Shown: positions 7,513 to 57,081, counted from the first letter of the stretch. The stretch: 64,000 nt of DNA from Lepidodermella squamata (GCA_047495785.1 JBLDXI010000007.1:2666001-2730000); one strand, 5' to 3'. Numbers and translations are program-made. Notes: generated by a model not told the origin, from the letters alone.

Positions 7513-10500
7513 TCAATTCATAGCAACAGCATAGGCATATACGTGAATAGCGATGAAACTACCGAGGGATGCGAAAAATGCAATCAAGTCAAAAAGTCGA
7601 ACCAGCCTTATCTTTTTCTTGCAAACGAGCCGGCCCCCACCTGCCGAGTTGACGAAAAACACCGTCGCCATTTGGTACAGAGTGATCACAGCATTAAGCA
7701 TTCCGAGGTCCATTATGTAGTCACCCAGCAAAATGCGACCCGAAACCGTGGGCAGAAGTGACCGAACGTCAGATTGTGCGACAATGAGAGCTAAAAGTGA
7801 CGTGACGGTGACCGTTGGCCTCTCAGCAGTATCAGGGTCCAAAAGGTACGTGAAGAGGTTCAGAGCAGCCAGTATCATGCTAGGAGCTGCCAAATTAGTG
7901 ACGTACCAATCAGGAATTCGTTCCAACGTAACTTGACATGCCCATGCTTGAACAGTGTTGCCAACATATTTTATCTCACTCAAATCCACTGAAATGTCTT
8001 GAAACTTCCACTCATCAGTTTGATTCGCCTCGCGCCACGAGCAGTAGGGAGGGTTCTTTATCTGGAGCACGTTAACTGGCCTCTCGAGATGGAAGTAAAA
8101 TTGGCAGGTTTGTTTATCGTACGGGAACTTCGTAAGATCCAACGTGCAGTCTGAAGTGAAAATGCCTTTTTTGACCATCCAGAATTCAAAGATTTGATAA
8201 CCGTTGCTTTGACTCGCAACAGCTGTTATGTCTTCACTGAAACGTTCCTTCCCAAGCATGTAGTAGTTGGAATTAGCTGCACTTGCAAATGTTAACTTCG
8301 GGACCCAAACCTCCTGGGAAGGTGCCACATACAAGACCTCTTTCCTATTCGAAAACAAATGGCTCATATTCGCCTTGCAGGTATTGACCTCCCAAGACAT
8401 GACAATGAGGCCACCTACTGAGATCGCTTCATTCACATTGCTCAGGGAGTCTAGTTTCGTGATTTCGAAGGCGAATGTTACAACTGTTGGCTGGCCGTTG
8501 TTTGGCGGAACTGAGCGATAACTTGCGAAGTGATCGCATTTCTCAAGAACGGACTCGACCTTAACCGGATCGGTGTTCTCGGCCGGTTTATCCGGTATTA
8601 TAGCGTCCATTATTGACGGCGGTTTCTGGATGACCAAATCTGCAGGTCTACCAACAGTTGGGCCATTACCTATACTTGGCATAATAACGTCGTTCAGTTT
8701 AACCGTGGTAGTTACAACGTTCGCTGTTGTGGTGGATGATGTTGTAGTCTGGCTGCAATCGCCATTTTCAGTCTTATCAGATTGATTATCCAAGCTGAAG
8801 AATCGGAAATCAGCAACGCGGATTACTTGGTTCTTAGGCGCGGCTTCCGAGGCACTGATCACTACGGACGAAGTTCCCTTAGAGATGAACGCATTCATCC
8901 CTGTGACATCCGCGTTTGTAATGCAATATGTTGGCACAATTTGGCCGGGTCTCAAGATGGAAAAAGAGAATTGATCGAATAGAAGCTGAACTGTCAGCTG
9001 TACACCGCTTTGAATATCACCTAGAGCAATGTCGCACCGAGAATCGCAAACTTGTATCCGCGTGGCTGTAGCAATTGAGGTCTGGAAAAAGTAGCCGACA
9101 TTCGTCGTTGAGGCCAAGTTGAGCGACACAGCGAGTCCGGCAAAGTTGAGGGAATTGCTGACCGATATGGTTGGATTCTTTGAGTAGTCAATAATGCCCA
9201 TGATTATAGAGCCGGAACTTGGGTCGGACACGGATAATTTAGTTTCGATTCGCCAATTTACAACAGTGGGCGGCAACATCTGTACATTTTAAATTAAAAC
9301 TTTTCCTTCTCCATTTTTCCATCAAAAATAACCTTTCTCGTTAACAATTTCTTATCTCCTGTACCAGCGTATGAGCTCAGTAGTACTATGGATCGCTCCT
9401 CAACTTTAAATGTCTCCGAATTCCAGTTCAAAGCTGGAAAAATGTTTAACCTCAATTTTTTACGCTTTGGAAAGTTTACCGATGTTTTGTTGATTTTCGA
9501 ACGAAGCTGAGCACAGCTTGTTTGCAACCTTTTGAGACCATGACGGAATTGCTAGGAAGTCAGTGTTTGCGGCTAGTGACTTTGTTTGATCGCTCGCTGG
9601 GATTCGAAGGATATTGTTGAAATTCATTGCAACCACCTTGACTTCGTGATTTCCGACTTTTTTCAATATCACGGCGTTGTTCGAAGAAACAAGAGCGATT
9701 GAGATCGGAGTTTTTGTGGAAATTAAATCTGACAGAGCCGTCACGGCGATGTTGTCGAAGCAAACCCCGGGCAGGCGATGAAGCCGGGAATATGCCGCAA
9801 CTGTCAGTCGGTTATTGACACTCTGCATAACGATCTGGATGCCGGATATGAGATCAACCTGGGAGAAGGCGCATTGCGAATCGCAATTTGACCTCTCGCT
9901 CTGTTCAAATGTGATCTTTAGATCATCGGACACACTGATCTGCTGGCGGGCTGAAGTAGCCCCACTCGGTAGATACTGTGCCAGAATAACTGCTGGCGAG
10001 CCTTTGAAGGAAAATGGATCTGAACTGTTAGTGATCAAATTGCCATCGAATTTCCCTAAATGAGAGCAAAAATAAAACTTTATCTTAATCATTTTGAAAT
10101 CATACTGATGTAATCCTTAACTTTGTCCGATTTCGCGATTATAATCGAAAATAGTGATTTGGGTTGATCAGCAGTGACGTAGCTTTCAGATTTGAACTCG
10201 ACCTCGATTCGCCAGTTCGGTTGCTGAAAATTCGCCTCAGAGTAGACCGCACCGATTTGGTTCACACCCGCCTTAGCCAACTCCCCTGTGTATGGATTAG
10301 CCATACCATATGCTGACCATGTTGAGTTGAATGTCAATTCAAGGTCTTGGGATATCTCCGTATTTGTTGGCAAATCAAGTATATCGCGATAGGTCATAGG
10401 TTGCACCTCAGGTGAAGCGGGTGGGTTTAATGGGTCCAAGGCTCGAGATTGACAGACATGCGGGAGTTGTTCGATCTCCCCACGGGTTAATATGGCGCTG

Positions 10501-13208
10501 TGCCAGCTTAAACACGCAATAAACCGTGTGTTTACCGTATTGGAACACGTCCCTCCAGTAAAGCAGCTGTAGCCGATCCTTAAAGAGCTGCCCGAGGTCG
10601 CAACAGGGATATCGACGCCGAAAAGCTCCGTGGTTACGTTCAAATTGCGGTTGAAGCATTGCAGTTTCCGCTGGCTTTTGTCGTAGGTAACAGCGTAGAA
10701 AATCCATTCATTAGTGTTCCCAGCGATACATCCGCCAATGCTAGCCAGAGAATTACCAACTCGATGAAGAACTTGAATGCCATTGTCTTTCTTGAAATAT
10801 AAACTGAGAAAAGGGTCTATCATCAACATGCCACCGTCGTCATCCGACGCACGTCGGAAGGAGAATCCCAGCGTGAAAGTCGGCGACATAATGAAGTTAT
10901 CATACTGAGCGATCTGATTGTTGGAGAAGAAATTCGTCGACATAGACGTTTCGGCAACTCCCCATGGTCCGCCGATTAATGATACTAACGTTGGCTCACC
11001 TTGCTGCGCTGGAATATCATTAATGATGTCAACATTCCCAGCTTGGCGATCGAACGGCCAAAATCCGATGGCAGACGCGAGACGAGGAATATACAGCTGT
11101 TTGTTGTTTTTCACAGGCTCGTAAGCCCCTTGCCGTTTCTCGCGGCAAGCTCGTGGTAAATCCGATATCTCGCTATCAGACAGCTTTACGCGGTACAGAA
11201 TTAGGCAAGACATTGCGTCTCCTTTGTTCATGTCTTGTAATAACCCGTCTCCTTTTCCAGCCCAGGCAGAGACAATCGCTGATACTTCCATATCGACGCC
11301 GGTCTGAACACCCAATCGAATCATAGGTGGGCCGGTAAAAATGTCCAAAACTTTGCTTTTTCTGTCATATGTTGCTGCGATATACGGCCACTTTGAAATG
11401 TCGACGGTAATATTCATTTTTGGAAATAGATCTGGCCATACAGACATTTCACTTGACTTCATGTACGTCAAGGCGAATATTCGAGAGTCGAAAAATTCTC
11501 GGCTCAAGCGTATCAAAGTTCCATCAGCCCCACTGGAAATTTTAGCGGCAAAGAAAAGGGTGAATGTGTCAGCCAATCTAACAGTTTTATACCGCGAGAT
11601 GTAATCTTTCGACTTGAGAACGTAGGACGAATTTGTGCCATGTGGGCCGTCTGCGTTCAGCACAGTATTAGGACTGACATCTACGAATGGGTTGTTGCAA
11701 ACTGAGTATGCTAGATCGCATAAACCATCACTTTGATCCATAGGTACAAAGAGGGACAACTCGGACGGCTGGGGTATAGGGTCTTTCAGCATCTCATTTC
11801 CGAAGCCTTTGCATGACGTTTGAAGCTGCCATATTTCAAATGTTGTCAGTCGCTGGTTGAAAACCATCAAGCAATAAATTGCGTCGTTGCTTCCCACATA
11901 CAACTTCTTAGCTGATTCATCTTCAGCGTATCCTAGCGAGAAGGACGATACATCATCGCCAGGCAAATTCAACTGCTTTGTTTCATATCTCAGATTATTT
12001 TCCTTTCCGGAATAAATCGTGAATAAGTTGTTTTTGGATTCATCATACGCAATTACAACGAAACGCCACTCATTCCGCGGTAAAACATTGCTGAATTTGG
12101 CCCTTTGGGCTGATAGTGCAACCGGGTATATCACGTCCAATGTATTTGTCGAAGAATAAATAACTGAGAACAAGCGTCGTTCACCAAAGCCTGCGAATGT
12201 GAATAGGCCTCTTTCACCGACGTCACTGGAAATCTTGACCGCAAACGCCACAGTGAAGAACTTGATATTTTGCATACTCAAGTACATCGTTATCAAAGCA
12301 GCACTTCCTGTCGGAACGTACAGTGATTGGTTTGTACCAAAAGCATCCATGACAGCTGTTGCGGTTAATTCTCCAGATTGAAATTGGGCAACCACTTGCC
12401 GCGCGTCATCAAATGCCACATTGCTGGCGAGAGGAAAAAAGGATTCGAGAGCCCATAGGCGTGGGAAAGTGTAATCCAGCCGAGCGTTGCCTTTCGATTT
12501 GCAAACTTCAGGTAGTTGAAAAGTTTCATATTTGGTTAAGCTCGAATCGTAAAGAAAGTAGCAAGCCATTGCTCCAGGAGAAGAGAAAGACCCTTTTTTC
12601 GTCCCTGCATCGGCATAGCCAACTAAAGCTGTCACGGCTGTTCGCGAGGAGAAAATGTCAGTTAGGACCATCTCGTAAGCCAGTTGCCAATCGATAATCG
12701 CCTTGTAGAAAATATTTGCCCGATTTGCCTGATGGTCATACGCCACGGAGATGTAGTTCCAGGTATTTTTGACAAGTAATCGGCCTGAATAAAGCAGCTT
12801 TGAATCAACCCATACCTCAAGAGTTCCATCTTTTGTTGCGAATATGCAAAATTTGCATTTACTAGTGCCCCTTATCTCAGTTAACCCGCGGTCAGGATCC
12901 GCATCTCCATCCGGATAGAACACTGCCAAGAAAATCGTAAAAGAATTCGTCAGGGTGAAACCTTGAGATAGAATTTCCTTTGTGTTATCAGTCGAAGTGT
13001 ACGACGAATATGGTCCGTTTGGCCCGGGAGTATTGATCACTAAACTGCCCGGTGACGAGCTCGGCGCCTTGCCATCCTTCAGATTCAACACGCCGTTATC
13101 ATAATCCAAAGGATAGAAGGCTAATAGGTTTGCTGGTCGTGGCCACTGCCCAGTATCAGCGGCACAACAATTGGCAATCAACAGAGTAACAGTAAGAGGA
13201 AAACGCAT
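7513..13208 (-). CDS. Giant multi-lectin-domain Cys-loop ion channel, paralogue 1, ~1848 aa; exons 13208-10106, 10055-9480, 9433-9333, 9279-7513
   Basis: Three 46-53 nt GT-AG introns fuse four ORFs in frame. Signal peptide MRFPLTVTLLIANCCAA; four repeats starting xP.P..L..F.P.D and ending C..hY...L...E..QL...C; two NWRIE domains; Thr-rich linker; WVP, Cys-loop CTLDLTKFPYDKQTC (C-x13-C), LxR..WY..N...P pre-M1/M1 and four TM helices. Confidence 0.9.
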
Positions 13209-17065: not shown

Positions 17066-17087
17066 TATCAATGATTTCTCAACATCC

Positions 17088-25879: not shown

Positions 25880-25944
25880 AAACATGCTTTTTCAGTTTAT
25901 TACAATCTTTTAACAATAAAAAGAAACATGATAAAGATTAGGAC

Positions 25945-29898: not shown

Positions 29899-29905
29899 TA
29901 TAAAA
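29899..29905 (+). promoter_or_regulatory. Candidate TATA box for the Asn-rich gene
   Basis: TATAAAA ~75 bp upstream of the ATG at 29977. Confidence 0.45.
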
Positions 29906-30915: not shown

Positions 30916-31161
30916 AAGACAACTCGGAAATATAAAACTGTTCACATCTGGCATGTGAAATTTTCGCATTTTATTAATTTATATTTTTTGCCTTTTCGGC
31001 TAAATAAAATCGTATCGTATAGCTGATTCTTTTGTACTCAAAATCGATAATTACATGGTCAATAATTAATTATTCATGAATAACACTATAGGCGATATTC
31101 GCACGCTTGTTCTTTGCTACTATGAAATATTGTTCTATATTGAGTACTCTCACGCTCCTTC

Positions 31162-37938: not shown

Positions 37939-40900
37939 ATGCATTACATAATTTCGTTAACCCTTGCGTTGGTCGTATCAGAGGGCAGTGTCATTGCTGC
38001 CCCCCGCCATGAACATCTTATCGGCTATTGGCCTTTAGACGATGAGAATGGCATCACTAAGCAGCCAAACAAAACTGTCAATGTGCTCATCAACGGAACA
38101 GGAGCGCAGCTGCAAGAAGCTGTAAATGGCCCGTTTGAGGTACCATTTACATCTTACACGGTGAAGCCGAATGGCGCGAATTTCATCCTTCATGATACCG
38201 TTGATTTCTTCGACAGTTTCACCATCGCTATGTTTCTGAATTTCGACTCCTCGCTGCAAATCAAGCGTGGAGTATTCGAACAGCGAATTCGAAACTCTGG
38301 AAACACGGCTGATATCAATTACTGCCGAATCTGTCTGATTTATTCGCCTGACGATCGCACGCTGAACTTGCATGCGAAGGATAGGAAGACATCAAAGGAT
38401 GTTGTAGTAAGTCGAGTACCAGTAAAAACTTCGGGTTGGTTCCATATAGCAGTAACATACGAGAAAAATCAAGGGATAGTCAATATCTATTACGACTGGA
38501 CTCTCTTCTCGCGTCTAACCAATACTCTTTTTGAGAATCCTATTCAGAAAAACAAAAATTCTGTCTTACTCGGAGCTGCTCTGGCCCCGGAAGAGTATCG
38601 TTTTGCGCCAAGTGACTCTATTGCTTGTGTCATGGTCTATGATTTCAATATGAATTACTTTGACCTCCAGCGGCTGAAACAGTTCTGCCGCACTGGGGGA
38701 GGAACGGATTATTTGGAATCATGGGTACCTAGGCCGTGGAATCTCTGGGGATTCTGGCCTCTAGACAATATTAATGCCACAAATGTGGCAGATTTCTCGC
38801 CGCCTACTGGTACGAATTGCAGACCTGCTATTCAGACAGATATCGGAGGTCTGTTCAAAGATTCGCCTTCGTCTGTTACAGTCATTAGAGATAATGCATG
38901 TATTGCTGAATCGACGGTCACTGGGGATAGGGCAACAAGTTCGTTCACCATCAGCTTCTTCGTCTATATTTTCGACAATACCATTGAGAGGACAGTCCTT
39001 GCTTTAAAGGGAGAAAGGCTTTCAGTTGCCTATCAGAATGGCAGGTTGGAATTGAACTCGAATGGCAAAACTGTGGACAAGGTAGCTATAACTGCTAAAC
39101 TATGGATGTTTTATGCGATATCCTATGATGGGAATAGTCAGAGATTGGCTCGTTTCTCAAAGGTGTCCGACTCGAAATTCTCCAGATCATTCATCACAAC
39201 TGACCCTGGAATAAAGAGCAACACATTCACCATTCAAATGGGCCAATCAATGGGCAAGAGCGATGCAGTAGCATGCGTCATGTTCTACGGAGATTTCTTG
39301 AATTTCTTCGAAATCGCCCAGTTGCCAGGTGTTTGCAAATCAAGGGGCCTGGAAGCTGTACCTGATCGACCTCCATCAATTGTTGATATCATCGCTTACA
39401 TGCCCCTTGATGAAGCTAGCAAAGATGGTGACAAAGCCATGGATATTGCATATGGTATCGAAAGTGGGGGTAAGGAGAAACCGATTTCAACAAATGGTCT
39501 TAACGGCCCGCAGACTGCAACCGGAGTCAATGATGATAACAAGTACGCGTATTACTTCGATCTCAAATACCCAACGTCGTTCACGTTCGCCTTCTATCAC
39601 AAAACCCCAGCGACTTCGGGTAGTGGCATGGTCACTATGCAGCATGCAAAAACTGCCGCAGCTGATGACCCAATATTCTCTGTTGAAACCGAGCCATCAG
39701 GTCTTTTAGCTTTGCGGATTTCAAATGACGACAGATCAAAATTTGCAGTCTTGCGTTCAATTGTGGCTGCGAAAAACTGGACGTTTTACGCCATAACCTA
39801 CGACAAGGTCAACAACCGGCTCGAACTTTACGCCGGCGACCCTCCTAGGCTTAGGGCTTCCTTCCTAAACGTGAATCTGCCCCTTACGGATATGATGCGT
39901 ACATACTTCGGCGGAAATCTGGATACACGTCTGAAAAAGACCGACGCAATGGCATGTGGAATTTTCTATCAGGGAATTTTGAATAACTGCGAAATTGTGG
40001 ATTTGCCGGAAATTTGCAGCGATCCTGAAAGATCGGTCGACAAAATGCCTGTTGACTTTACATGCAAAAGGGGCGGAGCTTGGCCCAGGCCCAACTATCT
40101 AGTAGGCTTCTGGCCTCTAGACAGCTATTGGAAGGCTAATGAAAGCGCGTATCAAAAATATCCCGACAGCGTAGCGAAATCTATTAATGCCAAGAAGGAT
40201 CAGTTTTCGAATGCTCATGGTGCAGTTGGTACAATTACGAATGCAACGCTGGCTTCAATCGAAAATATTCAACTGTCGACGAAATTTACCGTTTCGTTTT
40301 TCTACTACCGCGACGACCCTGATTCAAAGAAAAAGGGCGCAACCGACTCGCCTATTGTTGGCTTCAACAATGGCCTCAACATTTTCATGTCAAAGCCCGA
40401 GGACAAAACCTCTTATCAGCTAACTGTATATAAAGGCAATCCGATCGATGGTAGTTTAATATCAATGAGAGCTCCAGCCGTTGCCGCGACAACATGGAAC
40501 TTCTATGCGCTGACGTACGACAAATCCAAGCGAGAGTTGGAGATATTTTTTGATAGCGGCTCGAAAAAATTCCAGGAAGTTGACATCAAAGCTGGCGTCG
40601 CAGGAAATTCGATGAACATATCGGCCGCTTGTTTGCCGACTGGCTGCAAGGCTGAAAGTAATGGAGATAACGCCTACGCATGCCTCATGGTCTATAGCAC
40701 AGTACTTTCCCCGCAAGAAATCAGCCAGCTTAAATACGTTTGCTCTAGTAAGGGAAATGGAACTTTGGACAGTCCACAAATCATTGAAAGTGTCCTCTCG
40801 TATCAAGACATTCTAACCTTCCCACCTAATGATCAGTATACTGCGAACGTAATTTCAAAGTATAATGCGACTGATAATTCAACTTACCAGTCTTGGACGT

Positions 40901-43845
40901 ACTTCAATTTAGCCAAGCTCAATACGGGCCAGCTGACTAACCCTGGAAAGGGCAGGAATGTTGGAGCCATCAAGTCAGCCTCTAGCATGTCGACACCTGA
41001 CTGGAGAATCGAGCTTCAAGTGAGGATTGAGCCAACAAGAGGCGGAAGTATACAAGGGGTCGGCTATCTTCTTGCTTCGGCTGAAGATTTGGACAAATAT
41101 ATTCAAGACATGACTGGTCTAGCTGATGGCAGCGCTCCTTGGACATCATTCACAATGCTAAAAAGTGGGCGAAAGCCTGCGATAGCCTTCTTACAATTGA
41201 TCCCCATGGGCAATGGTGTCCGTCGACAGTTTGTTGAGTTGAAGAGAGTAGCCGCGAAATCTGAGTTTTCATACTTCGAATCTTCAGATGGCGATCATTG
41301 CAACTTTATTGATACTGACCTTATCAACGGCCTGAGAATTGTCGCCCAGTCTGTTGACAACGTGATGACTGTAGCTGTTTACTCAAAACTTCACCGTCTG
41401 CCTGGAGTGTGCTTGGACAACCTAGACATAACTGCATTCAATACTCTCATAAAAGGGGGCGATGTGAGGTTGGCTATCGTTGGATCTAACAGTCTTGCAA
41501 AAGGCTGGACGGGGTTTCATAAATTGTTCGTAGATGAAGTTACTCTATATTCGCTACAACAAGGCGTTGATCGAAAACGTAGGACGACCGCGGATCCGTT
41601 CGGGCCAGACACTGTTTTACTGCCTATTTCGAGCTGGCAGCCACAGTATGCAGGTCGTCTCTGCGATTATTCATTCGAGGATAGCAAACAATTTGGTAGG
41701 TGCTTTGAAGTCTTTCGAATTTCTATTATTTTTGTAATTTGTTTTAGCCGAAAACTGGATATCGGACAAACCTAACGTGCCTTCGTTGGCGGACCTTGCT
41801 GCTCCTGTGGCTGTGACTGTTGGGACTGATACAATTATTTTCTCAACAAAGCAACCTCTTCCAAGTTTTGCGAGTAACCTACGAATGGAGGTTGATTTGT
41901 CTGGCGTGCCAGCGTCCTTCAAATGGATAACAATCCTAATTTCAAATAATACAAATATCCGTTTCAACGAAGGTGGGTCAGTGCAAGACTGGAGAGGCTT
42001 TCGAATCACCATCAAAAGTACCGGGGATTTCAAATACGGCTACATCTATAGTGCAGCCTACCAATTGACCGGCCAAGACTCGACAATCTGTAAAGTCGAT
42101 GCCTCCAAAATCTCCAGCCCCTTCAAAATTGGCATTAACAATGTTCATGACCAAGTAACGGTAACTTTGAAGCTTGGAGAAGGCATCATGCCTCTGTATT
42201 GCATATCAAATTTTGATGTGACTGGCATTGCCCAAATGATAACTGCTGGGAATATGAAGATATTCATGGGCATTCAGCCAGCTACTTCAACTGCTGTAGA
42301 TAAAATAACGATCCAATCGTTCAAAGTTTTCAGCCTAAGTGACATTGCGCCCAACTCAAACTCGCCATGTAACTTTGCCCCTAATCTCTTAAAAAATTAG
42401 TTTCACTTTATTTTAAGGTCTGAATACCGAGACAACTACACCTGGCTCTACAACTACGTCCTTATCAACAACGGAGCCTCCAGAGCCAACGCCTCCAACC
42501 ACTCAGGAAGAAATAACGCAAAAACCCTTCTTTCCTTTTCCGAACCCCGGACGGGATATTTCTATCGACACACTTACAACTAATTCATCAGGCATCTTAG
42601 ATTCAATTTTCGGAATCACATCGACGATTGAAGCTATACGTAAGTGGTGTAACTCGAATGTGACCTCATATCTGATTATTTTTGCTCCATTAAGAGGAAG
42701 TCTTAAACCAGGGCCTACCAAATGACACTAGCTTCCTGCTGCCTTTTCTCCAAAACTTCTCCATCGACAGCATCATTGATGCTTGCAAGGACTTTGGACC
42801 TCTTCTCAGATCGCCGCCACGCTATAAAGATAAGCCAGTGAGTATTTCGATGCGTTTCAGTATTGATCGTTTTATGGGTATTGACGACGTGGCTCAAACT
42901 ATCAAAGTTTCTGGCCAGCTCTACACGATTTGGAGCATTCAGACCTGTTCAGTGCCGTTACCAGGCCGCTCTTTCGGCAGTACAAAGGCCGAGAGGGTCC
43001 TTGTTCCCGATTATGACGCCATATGGCATCCTAGTATAGGATTCCGTAATGGAGCTTATGATACAACGTTGAAGGGTGATGATTTCACTGACCGGCTTGA
43101 GTTTTTCAGTGTTGAAGTGAAGAACGGCTCTGAACACGACCAGAATGTGTTTTTCTATTGGAAGAAGCGCGGAATCTTCACGGCCGTCTGTCAGCTCGAC
43201 CTGCACCAATTTCCGGCCGATACTCAAAGCTGCCCGTTCCAGTTCACAATCCAAGAGCCTACAGATCTTCTCGTTATTGACTCTCTCGCAATGTATTTGG
43301 ATGAGGAATATCAACAAAAAGCGAAAATTACCGCAAATTGGAGGATTATCGGCAGTTCGTATCAAGTCGATAACGTCTCGTTGGACTTGAATGATATAAG
43401 CAGCCAGGCTACCTTTATTTTGAAGTTGAAAAGACGTCCGGAGTATTTCATCTACAACTTTCTTGGCCCGTGTTATGTTTTATCTCTGCTGTCAATCGCA
43501 GCCTTTTTCATCCCTCCTGACCAGTCAGATCGTGCTGTATTCAACGTTTACATGGTGTTGGCTTTCGCTGTAACTATGGGTCAAGTTGGTAACTATGTTC
43601 CCCAGACCCCGAATCAAATTCTGTTGGCGACTTATATTCAATGTCTGTGCTACCTTTGCATTTATGCTACCGTTTTCTCGATTTTCTTACTATGGCTTAC
43701 AACCACTTATCCTTCGACTATCAAGTCGGAAAGCGGGAAGTTTGTTACAACTTCCAAGATCTTTAATTGGGTCGGCCTTGCGATTTTCATAGCAGGCTTT
43801 GTTGGGGTATCAGTTTACGCTCGAAATATGTTTTCTTTTGCTTGA
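37939..43845 (+). CDS. Giant multi-lectin-domain Cys-loop ion channel, paralogue 2, ~1916 aa; exons 37939-41695, 41748-42368, 42418-42639, 42695-43845
   Basis: Signal peptide; four GYWP/GFWP-type LamG-like repeats; DWRIE L-lectin-like domain; RKRR; second domain; T/P stalk; Cys-loop CQLDLHQFPADTQSC; LKRRPEYF..N...P and M1-M4; three phase-1 introns splice in frame. Confidence 0.92.
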
Positions 43846-44172: not shown

Positions 44173-47100
44173 ATGAATTTGAAGCTCTACTGTGCCGCTA
44201 TTCTTATCTCCTTGAGTTGGAGACTGGCAGCAGCTATTCCTCATCAAGAAGACTTACTTGGCTATTGGCCTTTTGATGAGGAGAATGGCGATAAAGCTGT
44301 TGCTGGCACGCCACTGCCCAATGCAACGTTTGATTGCGCTTATGCAGTCCAGGAGGCTTACAATGGTCCGTTCGACGAGCCGTATTCCTCAATAACTACA
44401 CAAGGTGAAACTGGCAAATGCATCTTGCAAAACCAAATCGGAATAGCTAGCAGTTTCACATTTTCGATATACGCGCATTTCAGCGAAGGAGCGGATGGTG
44501 GCAAGTTTGATTTTTTCGAACAGCGGATCAACAAGCAGTCGAATGGTCAACGGAATTCTCGGCTTGGAGTCTACTTCATGCCGCCGCATCTCCTTGTTAT
44601 CGACGGCACGGGTCTTACCTTGGCTAAAGTTTCTATCTCTCTAAATAAATGGAGCCACTTTGCGATGACGTATGACTCGCAGTCGAAGGTTCTGCTGGTT
44701 TACGTCGATTGGCTCTTTGCTGCCAGAAAAACTGAGGTGAATCTTGTGGCACTGGACGCATCTTACGTGAATACAATCGTTTTGGGTAGCGCGGGAAAAA
44801 ATAATAACTTTCGCAACACGGATGCTTTATCATGCGCCATGCTGTTCAAAATCGTCATTGGATACTTCGACCTGCTACGACTAGGGCAATTTTGTAAAAC
44901 AAAAAGTGAGAGTTATTCGGAGGTTCAAGTGCCCGCCCCTTTCCACCTGGTCGGGTTTTGGCCAATGGATAAGAACAACATGACTACGAATCTTGTTGAC
45001 TTCTCCCCTTATGCCGATCCTGCCTGCCGTGCCGCTGAGCGAACAAATTTACTTGTTCCCTTTGGCATATCGTCCTCGCTCATTGTAAGAACGCCGAGTA
45101 AGTGCATTGCGAAAGCCAAGGTCATAACATCTGCGCCATCGGCTTTCTCGCTGAGTTTTTACGTTTACTTGAATAGAATTTGGCTATCGACAAGGATATT
45201 GTTCACATTCAAACAAGCAGGCGGCTATAGCTTCAAGATAGAATCTGCGAATGATAATATGAAAGCTTATACAGTTTCGATTCTCGACAAAACCATCTAC
45301 AGCGATCTACCTATGGAAAAATGGGTTTTTGTTGCGATAACGCATGACGGCAGTAATTACATAACAGCCTATATAATGCCCAAAGGCTCTAGCTTTTCAC
45401 GACTGACATTCAAGCTAAAGCCAGATTTTGTGAAAGGGCAAGGTGTTGACATAGAAATGGGTGCCCTCGAACAGGACGATGCCATGGCATGTGTAATGTT
45501 TTATAACACCGAGCTTAATTTCTTCGAGATCAATCAGCTTCCAACTGTATGCAAATCAAAGGGAAGTCAGGTCTTACCGAACCGCCCACCAAAACTGCGA
45601 GACATGGCCCGCTTCTGGCCGTATGATACTATTAACAGGGATGTGGATATTGCTTATGGATATGCAGCGGATAATCAAGGCAACAATATTCAGTTCCGTG
45701 ATGGTCCCCACGCGTCGATAAAAGCAGTTAGCACATCATCTGCTGCTACTAGCCAAATTTACCAATATTCAGGGGTCCTGTTAAAAACCTCCTTCACCTT
45801 TTCAATCTACCACTTGACCACTGGCGAAAGTGGGATACTAAAGTTCATGGATAAAATGGCAAGCAATTCGATTTTTTCGATTGAAATCAGCGCACCCAAG
45901 AGTTTGGTGCTTCGGCAGCTTCAAACTTCTCCTGTTGCAGCGCTGCCTCTCGATACAATTGGCAAGTGGACTTTCTACACGTTTTCCTTTGACCAAGATA
46001 CGAAGCAGCTCTCTGTTTACATTGGCGACCCGCCAAAGTTGAAAGCAATCATGCTCGATACGAAAATTAATTTCGAAAATGTCGCACAGTTGATCGCTGG
46101 CAGTAAATTTAGCAAAACCGATGCAATGGCATGTTTAATGATTTATTCGCGTGTTCTGTCAAATAGCGAAGTCGCCGATTTGCCCAAGTTCTGTGAGAAA
46201 CGAGAGAATTACGTCGATAGCAGGTCGGACGACCAAACATGCTCACTCTGCGGACCATGGCCCAGGCCGAATTATCTCGTTGGATTCTGGCCTTTTGATT
46301 CCCGAAGCAAAACAGATGATCTTGGCTATGGCAGAGTTGCTGACGAGCAACATGTTTCAGCAACCGACAGATATGGCCAGTATGGACAGTTGAATGCAGC
46401 TGTATCAGCATCGAAGAATAATCTGTTGGCTAAGTACAACAACGTTCATCTAGCAACCAAATTTACAATTGCGTTCTCATATTTCCGATTTGAACAAAGT
46501 CCAAACGGTCCTGTTAGTGACAATGCCCCAATTTTCAATTTGGATGTTGGCCTCAGCGTATTCTATTTAAATACGATCGAATTGCGTGTGATTGCCGGAT
46601 TATCAGGCGATTATAAGGTACCAGCCGCTGATATGCTAACCTGGGGTTTTTACGCTATTACGTACGACAAGTCCACTCGCGAGTTGGAAATTTATTACTA
46701 CAATGCGACCAAGTCGACGAAATTTGCCAAGGTCGACATCAAAACTGGCGCCCAAAACACGCTCACAGTTGGTTATGCATGCACTCAGCCGAAACAATGT
46801 TTTACTGAACCCAACGGAGGCAATTGCTTCTCATGCCACATGGTCTATAGTGCTGTGCTGACTAAGGCTGAAATACTTCAACTGCAAACAGCATGTGGGA
46901 CAAGGAACGAGGGCAACTTTACGCTTTACGATTCGGAAGAGAAGCCTCTAACCTATGAGGATATTTTACCTTTGCCGGCGAGTTGGACAACGGAGCTTGT
47001 CATAGCTTGCAACGCTTCTGATATAACTTCCGGCGCGAATTGGAAATCAGTGAGCAGGGCAAGGCTAGATACAGGCCAACTCACCAATCCGAAAAGTGGG

Positions 47101-50100
47101 CGTAATCTGGCAGCGATGAAAACTACAGGCCAACTATCGAGTTCTGATTGGAGGATCGAGTTCCAAGTGAGGATAGATCCCAGCTACTCAGAAAATAGCC
47201 CGGCAATAGGTTTGCTTATAGCGGAGGAAAATGATATTGACCATCTGATCTCTGACTTTGCCGAGGCTTCTGATGCCGGGCATAATCAAATCAAGGATCT
47301 CCTCAACAGTGGAGATTTTCCGGGTTTCACGATCTTGCAAATGGTACCAACTGGCACGGGTTTACGACGTCAACATGTCGAGTTGAGAGGTGACCAATCT
47401 GATGCGATACTAGCAAGGAACGAGGAAAGCCAGGGCGATCATTGCGCGTTTTCCATCTCAGATCTTGCTAGGGGTGTTCGGTTTGTTCTTCAATCAGTCG
47501 GAAACATTCTAACGGTTGCTGCGTATTCAAATCTTCATCGATTGCCTGGTGTCTGCTTCGATAACATAAACATCAAAGCTTTGAACTCTCTGGTAACAAA
47601 CCAGGTTGTGAAGATCGCTATTGTTGGATCAAATAGCTTGGTAGCAACTTGGAAATCTAAACCAGCTCTATATGTCGATTATGTAGCCGTTTATAAACTC
47701 GAGTTGAAGCAAAGGAAACGCCGCGAGGCCACGTTAGATTTAACGCAGGCAGATGTTTCCTTGTTGCCGATGCCCAGTTATACACCCAACTATGCCACGT
47801 TCCTGTGCCATCTCTCATTTCAAGATTGTGGAACCTTTTGTGAGTTATGCTTTCTCTATTCAAGTTATTGATCGTTTATTATTTGATAACATAGCTACAG
47901 AATGGGATTCAAATGGCTACACTACGACTTGTCCATTGGATCAATCACCAAATGATCAACCTTTTGCCTTAGCGCTTTCGAATACTGCCGTTAAACTGTC
48001 GACCCTGCAAAGCATACCAGCATTTGCGCTTAACTGGCGTATTGAAGCAGAGTTTTCGGGACTCCAATCCGTTAGCCAACTTGCTATAGTGATTTCGGAT
48101 AAAGACTTCGCTGGAAGTTCGCTTGGTGACGATGGGAAAGTTCCAGATATGAATGGATTTCGGATATCGATAAGTGGGAATGGGAATTTCACCTACGGTT
48201 TCCGCTTTACTAATACCTGGAACACATTAACATCAACGAACTGCCAAGTGGATGCCTCGGAAATCGAGCGACCATTCTCGATTGGGTTCCACAATGCTTA
48301 CGATCAAATTACGGCTACGCTGATGCTAGAAGGCCGGGCCGTGTCTTTGTCCTGTTTTACTAACTACGACGTTACTGGTTTAGCACAAATAGTATCCACC
48401 GGCAATGCTAAAGTTTACATCGTTGCAAAGCCAACAGCAACCCCCTCTTCAACGATTACGATGAAGTCAGTGAAGTTTTTTGTATTAAATCAATCTTATT
48501 CAGCTCCAGAGCCATGTATGTTTATCCATTGATTTCGAGAACATTTCAGTGTAGCAAATTATGCAATTTAAGGTTCGCCAACAACAACTTCGACAAGCAC
48601 AGTTTCGACGACAGCTTCATCTTCGACAAGCGGGTCAACTATCAGCTCGAGTTCTTCGACAACTACGACATCGTTATACACGGCATCAACCCAAAGCCCT
48701 ACAGCCACCACGTCGACATCTGCGGTTTCTTCTTCTTCAAATTCCACGGAATCAACACCAACTTCTTACACAACTTCTACGAGTAGCGAAACAATTTCAA
48801 CATCTCAGACTCCTGAGCCAGCAGAAAACGCCGAGGAAGAGGTTTACATTTCAACAAGCTCCACACCTACCACTTCGATAACAACCGAAACCTCAACCAC
48901 TGGAACGTCTAAGTTACTTTCTACTGAAAAATCTGCCGACCCGGAGCAAGCTGTCATGGCGGCTTCAACGGCGTCTGAGACGATAGCTTCGTCTACATTT
49001 TCACCATCCTCAACAACCACTTCGACGGAGACGAGCCAAACCCCTCCAGAAGCAGGCGAAATAAGCAAGACGACGATATCATCCTTTATAAAAAATCTAG
49101 CTTCGCTTATCAAGCAGAATACGACAAAGGAGAACATTCGTAAGTACTCATCATTCCTTTTTGAATCGTTCTCCAAGCCGATTGTGATTTTTGTAGAAAA
49201 TTTGTTCAATAACAAGCCGCCATCCGACAGTTCGCCCCCATTCAACAACATCACTGCTAGCGACATTGTGGATGCTTGCAATGGCAGCATGGCAGCGGCG
49301 ATTCGATCGCCACCCCGTTACAAAGATAATCCATTGAATGTTCGCATGAATTTCAGCATCGATCGTTTTATGGGTATAGACGATATTGCGCAAACAATAA
49401 CTGTCTCAGGTCAGTTGTATACTACATGGTCCATCCAGTCGTGCCCACCGCTACTCAAGGGTTCATCTGACAACGGCTTGAAATTAGAAAGAGTTCTGGT
49501 ACCGACGCTTGAAGAATTTTGGCTTCCGAGCGTTACTTTCCGAAACGGAGCCTCGAAAATCTCGCTGAGAGGCGATCAATTTACAGATCGCATGGAACTT
49601 GTGGCTCTTGAGTTGGAAGGCAGCAACAATCAGACTTTGTCACACCGGGAGGTTTTCTTTTACTGGAAAAAGCGGGGCATTTTCACCGCTGCTTGTCAAC
49701 TCGACCTCCATGAATTCCCAGCTGATACTCAGAACTGCAAATTCCAGTTCACGCTGCAAGAGCCCAATGATCTCGTCGCAATCACCGGGCTAGACATGTA
49801 CATCAACGAGGAATATCAAAAGCAAGCAAAATTTACAGCGAATTGGCGGATTCTCGGTGGTTCTCATACCATCGAAAATGTCTCTTTAGACATGAGTGAT
49901 TGGAACAGCCAGGCTAACTTTATTCTTCAGTTGAAGCGCCGACCTGAATACTACGTACAGAATCTTCTTGGTCCTTGCTATATTCTCACTCTGTTATCTA
50001 CAGCCTCGTTTGCTATCCCTCCACAACACGCCGAGCGAACTGTTTTCAACGTTTACATGGTACTAGCTTTTGCTGTAACAATGGGCCAAGTTGGGAAATA

Positions 50101-50344
50101 CGTACCTGAGACGCCGCAGTATGTCATGCTTGCAAGCTATATTCGGGCCCTATGCTGCTTATGCATTTTCGCGACGATTTTCTCGGTGTTTCTCTTGTGG
50201 CTGGTCACGAGTCAGCAGTGGGCTATGTATAAGCCTCGTAAATGCAGATTTCTTACACCTTTTAGGATGATTAACATAGCGGGTGGCGTCGTATTCCTGG
50301 TTGCATTCATTGGCATCTCGCTGTCTGCTCGCGAAATGTTCTAA
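44173..50344 (+). CDS. Giant multi-lectin-domain Cys-loop ion channel, paralogue 3, ~2000 aa; exons 44173-47839, 47895-48515, 48573-49139, 49197-50344
   Basis: Same architecture and intron positions as paralogue 2; RKRR; long S/T stalk; Cys-loop CQLDLHEFPADTQNC; four TMs. Confidence 0.92.
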
Positions 50345-51001: not shown

Positions 51002-54000
51002 ATGACAACTGTTCGATGTTACTTTCCAGCGCTGATTTTAGCCTATATATGCCACGCGGCTCCTCGAGATGAGGCTCTCGTGGGTTATTGGCCATTCGAT
51101 GATGAAAGCGGTGTCCAGCAAGTTGATGGTTCACCCGATCAGACGATTAGGTTCAATGGGGCCCAGGTTCAAGAAGCATTCGCCGGACCATTCGGAGACC
51201 CGTTTACATCTATCACAAGCAAAAACGACATCGACATATTTTTGCAATCCGAGATCGGCATGTTTGATGATTTCACGATCGCAATGTACTTTTACTTCGG
51301 CTCGACGACGAATGCGCTGCGAGGGCTTTTCGAACAACGTCTAACAAGTAAGATTGCTTCACAAAACAGCGTTTTCTGCCGAATTTGTGCCATCTTCGCT
51401 GCCCCCAATATTCTAACAATTCTCGGTGATGCTGGTAGGACAGCTTTTGGAAACGTTAACGTCAGTCTGGATAAATGGCACCATTTGGCAGTAACATACG
51501 ACTCAAATGTTAAAGTCATCACAGCTTACTTGGATTGGCAGATCGCCTGGCGAAAGACCGATACTTCAATTCAGCATCAAGATCAGGCTAAGATAAATTT
51601 CCTGAATTTAGGGAGCGCCTATCCACAGGGCGATCAAAAGATGGGTAAAGCCGACGCCGTGTCCTGCTTATTGATCTACAACACAACATTGAGATACTTT
51701 GATCTTGTTCGACTGGAACAATTCTGTCGTACTCGCGGATCTCGATTTAATCAAATTCGGATGCCGAATCCTTGGAATTTGATCGGCTTCTGGCCTCTTG
51801 AAACCAAGTTTAACACGACTAACATTGCAGACTTCTCACCGGTCACGTCAACCACCTGCCCTAGGCCTATTTCCTCGGATTACCCTGGCCCATTTACTGA
51901 TGAATCGCTCGTTTTGACTGTTGATGGCTCTCCTCAATGCATCGCTGAAACTTCGCTGCAACTTTACAAAGCGATCTCGGACTTCACTTTGAGCTTTTAC
52001 TATTTCATAAGCGCGGATTCCACCACAAGAACCCTTCTTTGCTTAGAGTCGACATCAAGGCCTGAAACGGAGCTTTGTTTCAAGGCATCGGTTTCTAACA
52101 TTGAACTTACAATTGGAGGAAGCAGCGTTGACGTGCTCAACTCAAAGCCGACACAGTGGGTTTTTGTTGCCGTAACATATCATGACGGGGACTCTGTTAT
52201 CAACTTATTCGTTGAGCCTCTTGGAGAGAAATTTCATCGCTCCTCATCGAAAATGGGCCAACCTTTCAATGGGTTAACTCTGAAGCTGAAAATCGGCAAT
52301 GTCGTGACACGGGGCGACTCTGTGGCATGTGTCATGTTTTACAAAACGGCGCTAAACTTTTTTGAGGTTGCACAGCTGCAACGAACATGCGAATCCAAGG
52401 GCGTGGCTAATTTACCCGAAAATCCCCCTAGACTTGCTAGCTTGGCGGCCTTTATACCTTTGGATGCAAAGAGTGATGGACGCGACCTTGCATTAGGCTT
52501 ATCGCCGATTGAGAAAAGCTCTAAGAACATTGTTTTTATCAATGGCCCGTTTGGCGAGACCGAGACAGCAGTTACACTTCAAAGACAAGACTCCGTGTAT
52601 TCGTATGACATTAATTTCGACAATAAGGTATTCACTCTAGCATTTTACTACAAAACATCAGCTACAAAAGATAGTGGAATTATTAGCTTGGTGACTAGTG
52701 ACACGGAGGAAAATATCTTCAGCATTGGAACCCAGGCAGGAGGCAGACTCGCTTTGTTCATGGATAACGACAAAAAGCCTTGGGCAGTGATGCCTTTCAT
52801 TCCTGCAAATAATTGGACGTTCTACGTGTTCAGATTCGACAAAACTGAAAAATCGTTATTCGTTTTTACAGGCGACCCGCCAAGACTCATGGCCACGCTG
52901 ATTAGCGTGAAAATGTCGACAGCTGATAGAATGCGAGTTTACCTGGGAGGGAACACCGCGGAGAACAGGATGGAAGAAAATGATGCTTTATCATGCTTAT
53001 TAATTTACAACAGCGGTTTAACTGTTTGCGAAATCGCTAATTTGCCGAAATTTTGCCGCGGCCAAGAAAACTATGTCGAAAGCTACCCCTCTCTTGATTA
53101 TTCCTGCTCTGGAGGCCAGGCTTGGCCCAGGCCTGGCAGCATTGTCGGATTCTGGCCACTGGACTCGAGAAGCAAAGGTTCCGAAATGGTTAGTTTACAG
53201 CCTGCTGATTATGTATCTCCAAATGTTACCTACACGGGGCGATATGGACAATTCTCGCAAGCGAATGCAGTCGCTGGCACATCAAGCAGCCAAATAATAT
53301 CCAAGTATTACAACATCGCTTTGTCTCCAAAATCGACTATCCACTTTGCTTACTTTCGCGAGTACCCCACATCGAGTAATCCCGCAAAAGACTCGCCTAT
53401 TCTTAAGCTGATCTTTCCAGGAACTAACGGCATCAATGTTCTGTATTCAAACGCGTCCGATCAAAATAAGTTCGAAATAGCCGTTGTCGCAGGTTTGAAG
53501 AGTGATGGAACAATCAACAAGTTGAGCGTGCCCGCAGCTGGTGTGAGAGTTTGGGGATTTTACGCGATAACCTACGACAGAGCTAAGCGAGAAATCGAAA
53601 TTTTCTACAACAACGGCAGTGAGTCAAAATCTTTTCAAGGAGTCAATATTAAATCCGGTGTCGCTGACAACACGTTAGCTATTGCCCAAGCTTGTTCACT
53701 TAAAACTAGCTGCACGAACGAAACAAACGGAGGCAATTCTTATTCTTGCTTCATGGTTTATAGCAGTATTTTGACGCGTGAAGAGATCAAGCAGCTGCAG
53801 TATGTTTGCGCAACTCGCGGTTACGGAAGTTTCCTCACTCCGCTAGTCGATGAACCACCGTTGAGTTACGCTGATATTCTACCATTACCATCGATAATCA
53901 GCGCTAACGCTTTAGCTAGCTATAACGTATCGGACAATTCAACCTTCGGAAGTTGGAAACAAGTGAATTTTGCCAGGGTGAACTCTGGGCAACTGACTAA

Positions 54001-57000
54001 TCCTAAAAGTGGCCGAATTCTAGCGGCTATGGTATCTAACATCACGTTGAAGAGCCGGAATTGGAGGATTGAATTTCAAATCAAAATTCAGTCTGGCGGC
54101 GCACCATTCCCCGCAGGAATTGGTGTACTTTTATCAAACGAAAGCGAACTTTTGACCAACGTCAATGACTTTGGGAGGGCAACCAAACTCAACTCCGCAA
54201 ATATTCAAAACCTGTTGACAAGTGGCACGTTTCCCGCTTTGGCTATCGTACAAATAGTGCCAACATCTACGGGCCTACGCCGGCAGCATATTGAGCTAGA
54301 ACATGTTACTACTAGCATCGAGAAGAATGAAAAATCGCAGGGTGATCATTGTGGCATTTCTTCGTCTGATCTGATGCGTGGGGTAAAAATTGTCATTCAG
54401 TCATTGAATGACATTTTGAGCGTCGCAACTTACTCAAGGCTCCATCGGCTCCCAGGTGTTTGCGAAGATAACTTTCCCATCAAAAGTTTAAACGACTTCA
54501 TTATGGACCCTTCAAGCTCTGTCAAAATAGTAATTGTTGGCTCGAATAAGATGATTGCTGATGTGCCTACCGGAAATCAGACACTTTGGGTTGAAAATGT
54601 GGGTATATTCTCACTTCAAGAAAAGGATCGGAAGAAAAGAGAGGCGTTGATGCAAAATGAAGGCCCAGATGAGAATCTGCTCCCGATAACTAGCTGGCAG
54701 CCTCAGTTCGCTAATTTACTGTGTGAATATTCTTTCGAGGATTTCGCAGACTTCGGTAAAACCTCAATCAGCTTTCATTCTTTTTAAATTAATCTTATTC
54801 TTGATAGATCTGACATGGAATTCCAATGTCACCCTCAAGGCTGGGGCAGGTGATGGCGAAGTAACACTGTCTGAGGCCACTCTCTTGACTTCTAGACAAT
54901 CACTTCCGGATTCTGTTCCAAATTGGCGAGTCGAAATGGATTTATCAAGGTTTTCAACAGATGTCGAGCAGTTGACGTTAGGCGTCACCAACCAAGCGTC
55001 TATTGCTGTTGAAAGCGATGGGAGAGTCCCCGGCTTGCACGGATTCAGAATGACTATGACTGGCAACGGAATTTTCAGCTACGGCTATACCTATCAAGGT
55101 AATCTCACTAGTGGAACGCTTCTATCTGCGAATTGTAAGTTACAAGCCGCTGACATGGGAAAGGCCTTCAAGCTCGGCGTCAGTAATGTGTACGATCAAA
55201 TAACAGCCACGATTCTTTTGGAGGATAGATCTGCCCCGATTTACTGCGTAACTAACCTTGACGCGACAGGGATGGCTGAAATGATTTCGGCTGGAAATAT
55301 GAGAATGTTCATTAATTTTCGAATCAATCCGACTGCAAAAACCGAAGTGACTATAAGCTCCATCAAAGTCTTTAATATGACCGATTCATCTAGTACCTCG
55401 AACTCCCCATGTAATGTCGTAGTTATCAAGTATTTTATAAGCCATTATTCACGTTCACAGGTTTGCTGAGTTCTACATCAACGTCTACGTCACTGTCAAC
55501 GTCATCAGCTACATCCACCGCTTCGTCCACTACTACGTCTACTACGACTACGGCTTCGGAAACATCAACTGGTTTGCTGAGCACTTTATCGATCTCCACA
55601 CCGTTTTCAACTTCGTCCGTTACATCTACTACTTACACCGCTTCATCCACCTATACGGCTACTACCGAGATACTGACATCGACCGCGAAAACCAATCAGT
55701 TGGGAACTACGTCAGTCGAAGCGACAATCAAGCCCGCTCCCTCGATTCAAGAAGCTAAAGAGGATCAAACAACTGCCAGCCAACACCCAACGGAATCCGG
55801 CATTTCGCTCGCTAAATCATCCTCTGACCTTGTAGCCGAACTTTTAGGCAGCAATGCAACTGCCGAAAGTATTCGTAAGTTTGAAATGTCTCACGATAAA
55901 AAAATACCATTCTTGATTCCTCACCAGGCGAAGCTTTGAGTCAGGGCTTACCATCAGGTCCATCTTTCCCGATACCCTTTCTGGAGAATGTCACAGTAAG
56001 CGGGCTGGTCGCAGCTTGTAAAGATTTCGAGCCCACAATCAGATCGCCCCCGCGTTACATGGACTCGCCAATCAAGGTTACGATTCGTTTCAGCATCGAC
56101 CGTTTCATGGGCATTGACGACCTTTCTCAGACAATTAAAGTTTCAGGCCAATTGTACACATATTGGAGCATTCGAACCTGCCCGGTTCCATTACCCGGCC
56201 GGTCGTTCGGCTCGTCTAGGGCCGAACGATTTCTTATAACAAATTTCAGCGACATTTGGCATCCAAGCATAGGTTTCCGCAACGGAGCTAGTGACGTAAC
56301 TCTAAAAGGAGCTGACTATACTGATAGGCTAGAATTATTCGCTGTCGATTTGCCAGATGACGGGACCAATCAACAACAGGACGTGTATTTCTATTGGAAG
56401 AAACGTGGAATTTTTACGGCTTCGTGTCAACTTGACTTGCTAAAATTCCCGGCCGATACTCAGAATTGCCCGTTCCAGTTCACGCTCCAAGAGCCGAATG
56501 ACTTGATTGCAATCGACTCGCTTCAAATGTACATTGACAAGGAATACCAGGAAAGAGCGATGCGAACCGCTAACTGGCAAATTGTTGGGAATTCCTATTT
56601 CATCGAAAATGTTTCCTTGGACTTGAGTGATTGGAACAGCCAGGCTACCTTCATTCTTCGGTTAAAACGGCGCCCTGAATATTATATTTTCAACCTTCTA
56701 GGCCCTTGCTTTGTGCTAACGCTACTCTCAGCTGCTTCTTTCTTTATTTCCCCGGATCAGTCTGACCGTCCCGTTTTCAATGTTTACATGGTGTTAGCAT
56801 TTGCTGTAACGCGAGGCCAGGTTGGCAATTACGTGCCTGAAACACCCAAGCAAATTCTGCTATCAATTTACATCCAATGCCTTGCTTGCATTTGCGTTCT
56901 CGCGACTCTTTTCTCAATTCTTCTGCTTTGGCTTGCAACGACTCATCCCTCGACAATGAAATATGAAAATGGGAAGCTGTTAACGCCAATGAGAAAGGTC

Positions 57001-57081
57001 AATATCGCTGGCTTTTTCGTTTTTATTCTTGGTTTCGTGGCCTCGACTATTTACGCTCGCGACATCTTCGTATTTCACTGA
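51002..57081 (+). CDS. Giant multi-lectin-domain Cys-loop ion channel, paralogue 4, ~1974 aa; exons 51002-54755, 54808-55410, 55461-55874, 55928-57081
   Basis: Same architecture and intron positions; RKKR; S/T stalk; Cys-loop CQLDLLKFPADTQNC; four TMs. Confidence 0.92.

Follow-up and report, generated by a model that had tools for sequence, protein, structure and literature searches.

What a ligand-gated ion channel of the pentameric kind (pLGIC) might do with some 1450 residues of lectin-like protein on each of its subunits is the question raised by a stretch of 64,000 nucleotides from Lepidodermella squamata (GCA_047495785.1 JBLDXI010000007.1:2666001-2730000), referred to here at its full length as the window. 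The window contains four genes, A to D, each with one open polypeptide of 1848 (A), 1916 (B), 2019 (C) or 1974 (D) amino acids (aa). In all four, the scan with hidden Markov models (HMMs), Pfam and structure models recovered the order that a first-pass annotation of this DNA had claimed, namely a signal peptide, four LamG repeats (R1-R4), two lectin-like domains (D5 and D6), a stalk and a Cys-loop channel. Judged from their sequences, A-D are real, intact genes, four paralogues that diverged long ago within a modular family of Cys-loop channel subunits. We propose, with a probability of about 0.5, that the large ectodomain is a binding and anchoring or ligand-capture module, and that gating would take place at the channel's own extracellular domain (ECD) in response to a stimulus other than an amine.

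Gene models were obtained by enumerating GT..AG introns that keep the reading frame and by choosing among them for consistency between the paralogues, splicing thus being read from the sequence; the window has a GC content of about 0.43, and very long open reading frames (ORFs) are found on either strand. The models are as follows.

Gene A, 7513..13208, - strand: four exons (13208-10106, 10055-9480, 9433-9333, 9279-7513), 1848 aa
Gene B, 37939..43845, + strand: four exons (37939-41695, 41748-42368, 42418-42639, 42695-43845), 1916 aa
Gene C, 44173..50344, + strand: three exons (44173-47839, 47895-48515, 48573-50344), 2019 aa
Gene D, 51002..57081, + strand: four exons (51002-54755, 54808-55410, 55461-55874, 55928-57081), 1974 aa

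The 11 introns are all GT-AG, 46-57 nt long and of low GC content (0.22-0.36, against about 0.45 in the exons). Gene A has an open frame once its three introns (46-53 nt) are removed, and the earlier claim that splicing of short introns leaves one open polypeptide per gene was borne out for all four. Each protein starts at the first Met following an upstream stop, has a hydrophobic leader and ends a few residues past M4. Exon 1 is open for 1034 codons in A and for 1222-1252 in B-D, the single 1252-codon ORF of gene B spanning the signal peptide, the four LamG repeats and D5. At the other end, the last exon of A (9279-7513, one ORF of 588 codons) takes in the greater part of D6 together with the linker and the entire channel, and exon 48573-50344 of C contains linker and channel in one ORF with no intron between them; in none of the window genes does the channel part have a start or leader of its own. 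When all six frames were scanned with HMMs derived from the paralogues, exactly four sets of four LamG repeats, D5, D6 and channel were found, together with one lone LamG ORF. Among A-D, synonymous sites are saturated (proportion of synonymous differences, pS, 0.70-0.88) and the proportion of non-synonymous differences (pN) is 0.18-0.58 in every domain, and the domain order and the open frame of about 1850-2020 codons are kept in all four. Because the junctions lie within single exons in A and C, because old paralogues maintain the same open order and because fusions in a single ORF exist among metagenome relatives (see below), we regard the fusion as real irrespective of the choice of splice sites.

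Ten of the 11 introns are in phase 1, with sites at or near the borders between D5 and D6, D6 and linker, and linker and channel, and the D6 exon is symmetric (1-1), having a phase-1 intron on either side. A symmetric exon of this kind is the classical signature of exon shuffling, and the phase-1 introns at domain borders fit a history in which extracellular modules were shuffled onto a channel. Genes B, C and D lie head-to-tail with spacers of 328 and 658 nt; A lies about 24 kb from them on the opposite strand, so the four genes do not form one contiguous array.

The channel parts are located as follows.

Gene A, 7516..8538, - strand: Cys-containing segment ahead of the ECD (KCDHF..PPNN), ECD (Cys-loop 8104-8148) and M1-M4; Neur_chan_LBD 4.6e-13
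Gene B, 42784..43842, + strand: pLGIC with Cys-loop at 43189-43233, M1-M4 and an M3-M4 loop of about 20 aa; Neur_chan_LBD 1.2e-9
Gene C, 49277-50341, + strand: channel with Cys-loop at 49694-49738
Gene D, 56017-57078, + strand: channel with Cys-loop at 56425-56469

The Pfam family Neur_chan_LBD (PF02931) is matched with 49.5 bits in A and 38.3 bits in B, above its curated cut-off of 26 bits, and Neur_chan_memb reaches 19.7-24.8 bits, under its cut-off of 28.1. The region from the Cys-loop through M3 was aligned by phmmer to nAChR beta and 5-HT3A, the best matches of solved structure (E 5e-15); four transmembrane segments, with a pore-lining M2 carrying the 9' Leu, are accounted for by this alignment of M1-M3 together with M4, which is seen as a hydrophobic segment. 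The pattern C.LDL..FP.D.Q.C was found by regular expression in all four genes, and the C-x13-C loop, the FPxDxQxC motif, M1-M4 and the very short M3-M4 loop (about 20 residues) reported in the first-pass annotation all stand. Aligned with nAChR beta and 5-HT3A, M2 of B-D has S-2', D-1', R0', Y6', L9', V13' and N20'; M2 of A has E-1', R0', T6', L9' and V13'. No PAR motif occurs in M2 of A-D, and the pore is predicted to be of the cation type with the usual leucine gate.

The ligand site is a different matter. The aromatic box is not recovered, the position of the loop-B Trp being Gln in B and Leu/Glu in A as judged by pairwise sequence alignment only, and there is neither a loop-C Cys-Cys nor a YxxY before M1. 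With a non-aromatic residue in loop B and no Cys-Cys in loop C, a classical amine-transmitter site is unlikely in A-D. The window channels thus share with nAChR and 5-HT3A the aligned Cys-loop, M1-M3, 9' Leu, acidic -1' and basic 0' positions, but are only about 25-28% identical to them and differ in the loop-B and loop-C residues, in the short M3-M4 loop and in an extra conserved Cys pair, one Cys before beta1 and one after beta2. The segment ahead of the ECD (C[DK].F..RS.PP / PPNN) and the Cys after beta2 are common to the window genes and their metagenome relatives.

The ectodomain begins with the LamG repeats.

Gene A, 10434..13145, - strand: four LamG (Laminin_G_3-type) repeats, by Pfam and by four matches to the repeat HMM (E ~1e-60)
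Gene B, 37999..40764, + strand: four LamG repeats, by Pfam Laminin_G_3 in three stretches and by four matches to the repeat HMM
Gene C, 44236-46917, + strand: four LamG repeats, by HMM scan
Gene D, 51059-53830, + strand: four LamG repeats, by HMM scan

Exon 1 of B matches Laminin_G_3 (PF13385) at 6.7e-26 and 91.7 bits, above the curated cut-off of 27.6, which places the repeats in that family. R1-R4 are mutually homologous (hhalign probability 99%); hhalign gave no link between the LamG repeats and D5/D6, and we therefore treat them as two separate module types. The lone LamG ORF (13648-14499, - strand) lies about 430 nt upstream of the start of gene A and encodes a single LamG repeat of this family (E 5.9e-25 with the repeat HMM; Pfam Laminin_G_3 matches weakly). 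Its hydrophobic tail, ..IVIAVVCLICSYLF, could serve as a membrane or glycosylphosphatidylinositol anchor, and the ORF may represent either a small gene by itself or an alternative 5' exon of A. As a fifth repeat of A it was set aside, A having its own start and leader.

The two domains that follow were located chiefly by HMM.

Gene A, 8755..10421, - strand: D5 (9481-10421, interrupted by an intron of 50 nt) and D6 (8755-9480, one mini-exon included), by D5/D6 HMM
Gene B, 40771..41694, + strand: D5, predicted L-type-lectin fold with a low-confidence insert; RKRR at 41572-41583
Gene B, 41695..42419, + strand: D6, predicted L-type-lectin fold, on an exon between phase-1 introns
Gene C, + strand: D5 46924-47838 (RKRR 47713-47724) and D6 47839-48574, by HMM scan
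Gene D, + strand: D5 53837-54754 (RKKR 54629-54640) and D6 54755-55462, by HMM scan

By hhalign, D5 is a homologue of D6 (90.5%, E 1e-6), and the two domains of gene A are homologous to those of B-D in the alignment, their fold being deduced from the gene B models. AlphaFold2 models of D5 and D6 of gene B were made with 15-row alignments of window sequences and metagenome relatives. That of D6 has a predicted local distance difference test score (pLDDT) of 85.6 and a predicted template-modelling score (pTM) of 0.85; that of D5 is weaker (pLDDT 68.9, pTM 0.71), with an insert and a tail predicted to be disordered (pLDDT <50 from residue 263). For D6, the best matches in all four structure libraries searched were L-type lectins. 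Foldseek ranks 1-32 in the PDB were all of this kind (VIP36, ERGIC-53, Emp46/47 and the legume-lectin-like domain of Entamoeba), and VIA-align superposed ERGIC-53 over 175 of 206 residues (Z 16.9, root-mean-square deviation 3.0 A, 17% identity), followed by the Entamoeba domain (Z 16.6), VIP36 (15.8) and legume lectins (14-15). The AFDB clusters matched were L-type lectin-like proteins, near other ConA-like families, and in the ESM Atlas the match was an ERGIC-53-like cluster (template-modelling score 0.72). The top PDB matches of D5 by Foldseek were legume lectins, Emp46p, ERGIC-53 and VIP36 (E 1e-7). A legume-lectin beta-sandwich fold is therefore supported for D5 and D6 by the models, and the resemblance to ERGIC-53 and VIP36 first read from sequence motifs holds at the level of fold (AlphaFold2, Foldseek, VIA-align, AFDB and ESM Atlas). 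An 812-aa ORF from an ENA metagenome, P0161, has two D5/D6-type domains (residues 1-135 and 300-425) ahead of its channel; NVDGLAFWID in the first of them resembles GDGLAFW, a motif of L-type lectins.

Between D6 and the channel lies the linker.

Gene A, 8539..8754, - strand: linker of 72 aa, 35% S+T+P
Gene B, 42420..42783, + strand: linker of 103 aa, 41% S+T+P
Gene C, 48575-49276, + strand: linker of 234 aa, 55% S+T+P
Gene D, 55463-56016, + strand: linker of 167 aa, 50% S+T+P

The S/T stalk of the first-pass annotation is thus present in all four genes as a Ser/Thr/Pro-rich linker, with the reservation that in A it is short and only moderately S/T-rich. Since the linker is probably O-glycosylated and extended, the ectodomain is likely to be tethered to the channel ECD and not packed on it. 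Upstream of the linker, a furin-type motif, R-K-[KR]-R, occurs at one alignment position in D5 of B (41572-41583), C (47713-47724) and D (54629-54640), in a stretch where the D5 model predicts disorder. It is followed by a conserved segment, ..SW.P.[YF]A..LC.YSFED, which includes a Cys. Gene A does not have the R-K-[KR]-R motif.

A HMMER search with an exon of gene A against 1.84 billion representative proteins returned 2168 matches, 17 of them at E<=1e-30. The closest matches whose source was looked up are all unnamed, uninterrupted ORFs of ENA metagenome assemblies, on contigs of eukaryote-like character (trypsin clusters, ankyrin genes). Several of them carry a signal peptide, LamG repeat(s), a T-rich linker and a channel in a single ORF: one repeat in P0012 (702 aa), two in P0001 and P0003 (914 and 916 aa) and three in P0019 (1099 aa; Pfam Laminin_G_3 and Neur_chan_LBD). 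These four share with the window genes the channel clade, a LamG repeat with the start motif GFWP(L/M)D, the T-rich linker, the pre-ECD 'CDHF..PPNN' segment and the short M3-M4 loop, but have only one to three LamG repeats and no D5/D6, are 702-1099 aa long and have channels 30-40% identical to that of A. Others (P0005, P0010, P0016 and P0161) begin within a domain of the D5/D6 type. On its metagenome contig P0019 adjoins an ankyrin-repeat gene (L002 95-2005), possibly by coincidence. Long named matches (Mactra, Glandiceps, Macrostomum and others; 700-1800 aa) were rejected as annotated fusions, being merged models of tandem pLGICs with two to four ligand-binding domains.

A tree was built from 72 channel domains (quick search in IQ-TREE, LG+C20). 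In it, A-D and all relatives bearing an N-terminal domain (NTD) form one clade of 28 (Shimodaira-Hasegawa-like approximate likelihood-ratio test 98); the named nAChR-like proteins, which come from molluscs, a bryozoan and a crinoid and are only 25-28% identical, lie outside it. Gene A is sister to P0001, P0003 and P0007 (support 97), and B-D (support 100) group with P0023, P0025 and P0045 (support 98). Members of the clade have no NTD (P0025, P0045 and P0006, each with a signal peptide), one to four LamG repeats, one or two D5/D6-type domains or other N-terminal modules, and from this mixed content we conclude that the family is modular; the predicted proteins of the window are its largest members. 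Among B-D the NTDs are 30-48% and the channels 55-69% identical (channel pN 0.18-0.26), and between A and B-D identity is similarly low in both, 21-32%. Given that the full layout of four LamG repeats and two lectin-fold domains is common to A and B-D, though their channels belong to different subclades, and that NTD and channel are similarly diverged between them, the data suggest that the entire gene has co-diverged from an old ancestor of this layout.

These observations bear on what the ectodomain is for. In the mechanism that we propose, the ectodomain of about 1450 residues would attach the pentamer to the glycans or proteins of matrix, mucus, cuticle or a partner surface, or would alternatively capture glycan or protein ligands; it would be tethered by the extended, probably O-glycosylated linker, and the pore would be opened at its own ECD by a stimulus other than a classical amine transmitter, so that the antenna sets the location of the channel and what the channel meets. 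In B-D the furin-type site in D5 may cut the protein into two chains. Such a module would resemble the adhesive ectodomain of a G-protein-coupled receptor (GPCR) of the adhesion class and would find a parallel in the separate scaffold proteins outside the cell through which other pLGICs and glutamate receptors are clustered. Localisation or ligand capture is favoured because a flexible tether cannot pass on a defined conformational change and because near relatives do without an NTD; the length of the linker argues against rigid allosteric coupling and permits tension or simple anchoring.

A number of points weigh against this proposal. That the linker is O-glycosylated and disordered is probable but assumed from composition alone. 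The NTD evolves faster than the channel among B-D (30-48% vs 55-69% identity), and this pattern would suit a diversifying recognition of ligands no less than it would a fixed anchor. Anchoring and gating are not separable in silico, and sugar binding by D5 and D6 is putative. None of 15 D5/D6-type sequences matched a Pfam family, Lectin_leg-like and Lectin_legB included, at E values up to 10, and there was no PDB sequence match with either the D5/D6 profile or P0161 as query. Lastly, the sole RNA-labelled run, from a differently coded organism, gave fold-back contigs of 72-163 nt with no splice joints listed, and the other run that matched is probably DNA of this same genome.

The antenna might instead be the gate itself, multivalent binding of glycans or proteins, or tension in the stalk, opening the pore of a contact- or force-gated pLGIC. 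With the classical residues of the aromatic box gone, a stimulus of some other kind is needed; each pentamer would have five tethers bearing 30 binding domains in all, the faster divergence of the NTD agrees with such a role, and a flexible stalk would be able to carry tension. We nevertheless consider this gating unlikely, since a mucin-like linker varying from 72 to 234 aa cannot transmit a defined conformational change, since P0025, P0045 and P0006 of the same clade have a signal peptide and no NTD, their core presumably working alone, and since no intracellular anchor is evident in an M3-M4 loop of only about 20 aa. Less likely than that reading itself is its further implication that these are the first Cys-loop pentamers opened by a macromolecule or a mechanical pull and not by a small diffusible ligand. 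Were it true, the crown of 30 lectin domains would attach to a surface bearing glycans (that of prey, a microbe, a mate or matrix), tension via five glycosylated stalks or release at the furin-type site would open a cation pore, and the result would be an ionotropic contact receptor built on a neurotransmitter-receptor scaffold. Proteolysis is itself the centre of another explanation, in which a convertase would cut at RKRR/RKKR in D5 of B-D and shedding would unmask or activate the channel, the four LamG repeats and most of D5 (about 1200 aa) being freed or kept non-covalently or by a disulfide. The shared position of the motif in the predicted-disordered stretch of B, C and D and the conserved Cys after it (..LC.YSFED) are in its favour, but A lacks the site despite an identical architecture, basic tetrads can arise by chance in loops and cleavage is predicted from the motif; we hold such maturation to be quite improbable.

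The loss of the orthosteric aromatic residues, the unusual Tyr at M2 6' in B-D and the frequency with which arrays of lectin-fold domains are met in recognition receptors would also be compatible with a non-conducting channel domain that serves as a pentamerising membrane anchor for a lectin array, for example in a pattern-recognition or adhesion receptor. This seems very improbable, the channel being the most conserved part of the protein (55-69% identity among B-D, pN 0.18-0.26) and the Cys-loop, the M2 9' Leu, the acidic -1' and the 0' Arg all being kept. Remotest of all is an artefact of the gene models, with lectin and channel parts belonging to separate neighbouring genes or the loci being decaying pseudogenes. 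The splice sites were indeed picked solely on frame and paralogue consistency; yet the junction of linker and channel falls inside one intron-less ORF in A and C (in A together with most of D6), four synonymously saturated paralogues keep an identical open frame and order, independent single-ORF fusions exist in other organisms and the channel part has no start or leader of its own. On the sequences this explanation is largely refuted already.

The remainder of the window contains the following features.

2452-2533, - strand: tRNA gene (Rfam RF00005, 49.9 bits), the one found
15213-15518(-), 16595-17062(+), 19102-19419(+), 21351-21629(-), 22883-23188(+) and 37185-37496(+): small Cys-rich ORFs
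24764-25910, + strand: Gly/Gln/Pro-rich low-complexity ORF with a 150-nt tandem repeat (3.9 copies, 99% match, 25166-25746)
25945-27678, - strand: cytochrome P450 gene (Pfam p450 5.9e-56, 338-aa exon)
30049-30912: Asn/Gly/Gln-rich ORF
57579-59081, 61562-63671 and 31144-31817, + strand: ankyrin-repeat genes (Pfam Ank_2 6e-57, 3e-68)

The small Cys-rich ORFs constitute a family of at least six copies between genes A and B, on both strands, with the motif ..YNDFASCCAATS.NVRYE..(D/L)(S/T)TPYKVCA(T/S)... The P450 gene probably has an upstream exon with a membrane-anchor-like start at 27358-27678. Ankyrin-repeat genes lie directly 3' of gene D.

Papers on DeCLIC and on pLGIC evolution report extra N-terminal domains in prokaryotic pLGICs, and reviews and recent structural papers treat such domains as a prokaryotic peculiarity, animal subunits being two-domain proteins of 400-600 residues; the main phylogenomic survey of pLGICs left terminal domains out on purpose. 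No publication describing LamG, lectin, pentraxin or FAMeT domains fused to animal pLGICs turned up in our literature search. The premise of the first-pass annotation, that animal pLGICs have no appended N-terminal domains, accordingly agrees with the literature but is too strong for the databases, which hold the LamG-bearing metagenome ORFs and labelled arthropod clusters. The latter were met in a language-model search of the ESM Atlas: clusters labelled Methyltransf_FA and Neur_chan_LBD (565-646 aa) and a 679-member cluster labelled Neur_chan_LBD, Ldl_recept_a and Pentaxin (905 aa). They resemble the window genes as animal pLGICs labelled with an extra domain, by cluster labels only, and Pentraxin belongs to the ConA-like superfold, as does LamG; they differ in length (565-905 aa) and in domain types, have a language-model similarity of 0.74-0.88 and are absent from the 150 best HMMER matches of the A exon. 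Going by these labels, extra domains on animal pLGICs are already in the databases, apparently uncharacterised. The window genes would belong to a kind already known, the pLGIC with accessory NTDs, in this case from an animal, built with new module types and of extreme size (about four times the usual). Lectin-fold domains joined to a Cys-loop channel via mucin-like stalks would constitute a modular family in at least one animal lineage, a candidate ionotropic receptor of glycans or surfaces and a natural system in which to ask how accessory extracellular domains affect the gating, targeting and clustering of pLGICs.

In DeCLIC two NTD lobes pack beside the ECD and modulate gating. DeCLIC and the other prokaryotic channels of this type share with A-D an extra beta-rich N-terminal module ahead of the ECD and transmembrane domain and a very short M3-M4 loop. 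DeCLIC is bacterial, however, and without a Cys-loop disulfide, whereas the window genes are animal, with a Cys-loop and introns of spliceosomal type, and have an NTD of about 1450 aa with six ConA-like domains that is separated from the ECD by a linker of 72-234 aa rich in Ser, Thr and Pro; A-D therefore fall outside the DeCLIC type, which we understand as prokaryotic, with an NTD adjoining the ECD and no Cys-loop. With ERGIC-53, VIP36, Emp46/47 and the legume lectins the relation would be one of fold, common in the models to D5 and D6, which differ from those proteins in having no match to Pfam Lectin_leg-like and in their predicted site, a plasma-membrane channel and not a cargo receptor. 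With the adhesion GPCRs the analogy is one of function only. The membrane domains of the two are unrelated, the window proteins yielded no GAIN domain and their furin-type site lies in D5 and in B-D only; in both, however, a signalling membrane domain is preceded, across a mucin-like stalk, by a long ectodomain of adhesive type in which LamG, pentraxin or lectin domains are frequent and a proteolytic site may lie.

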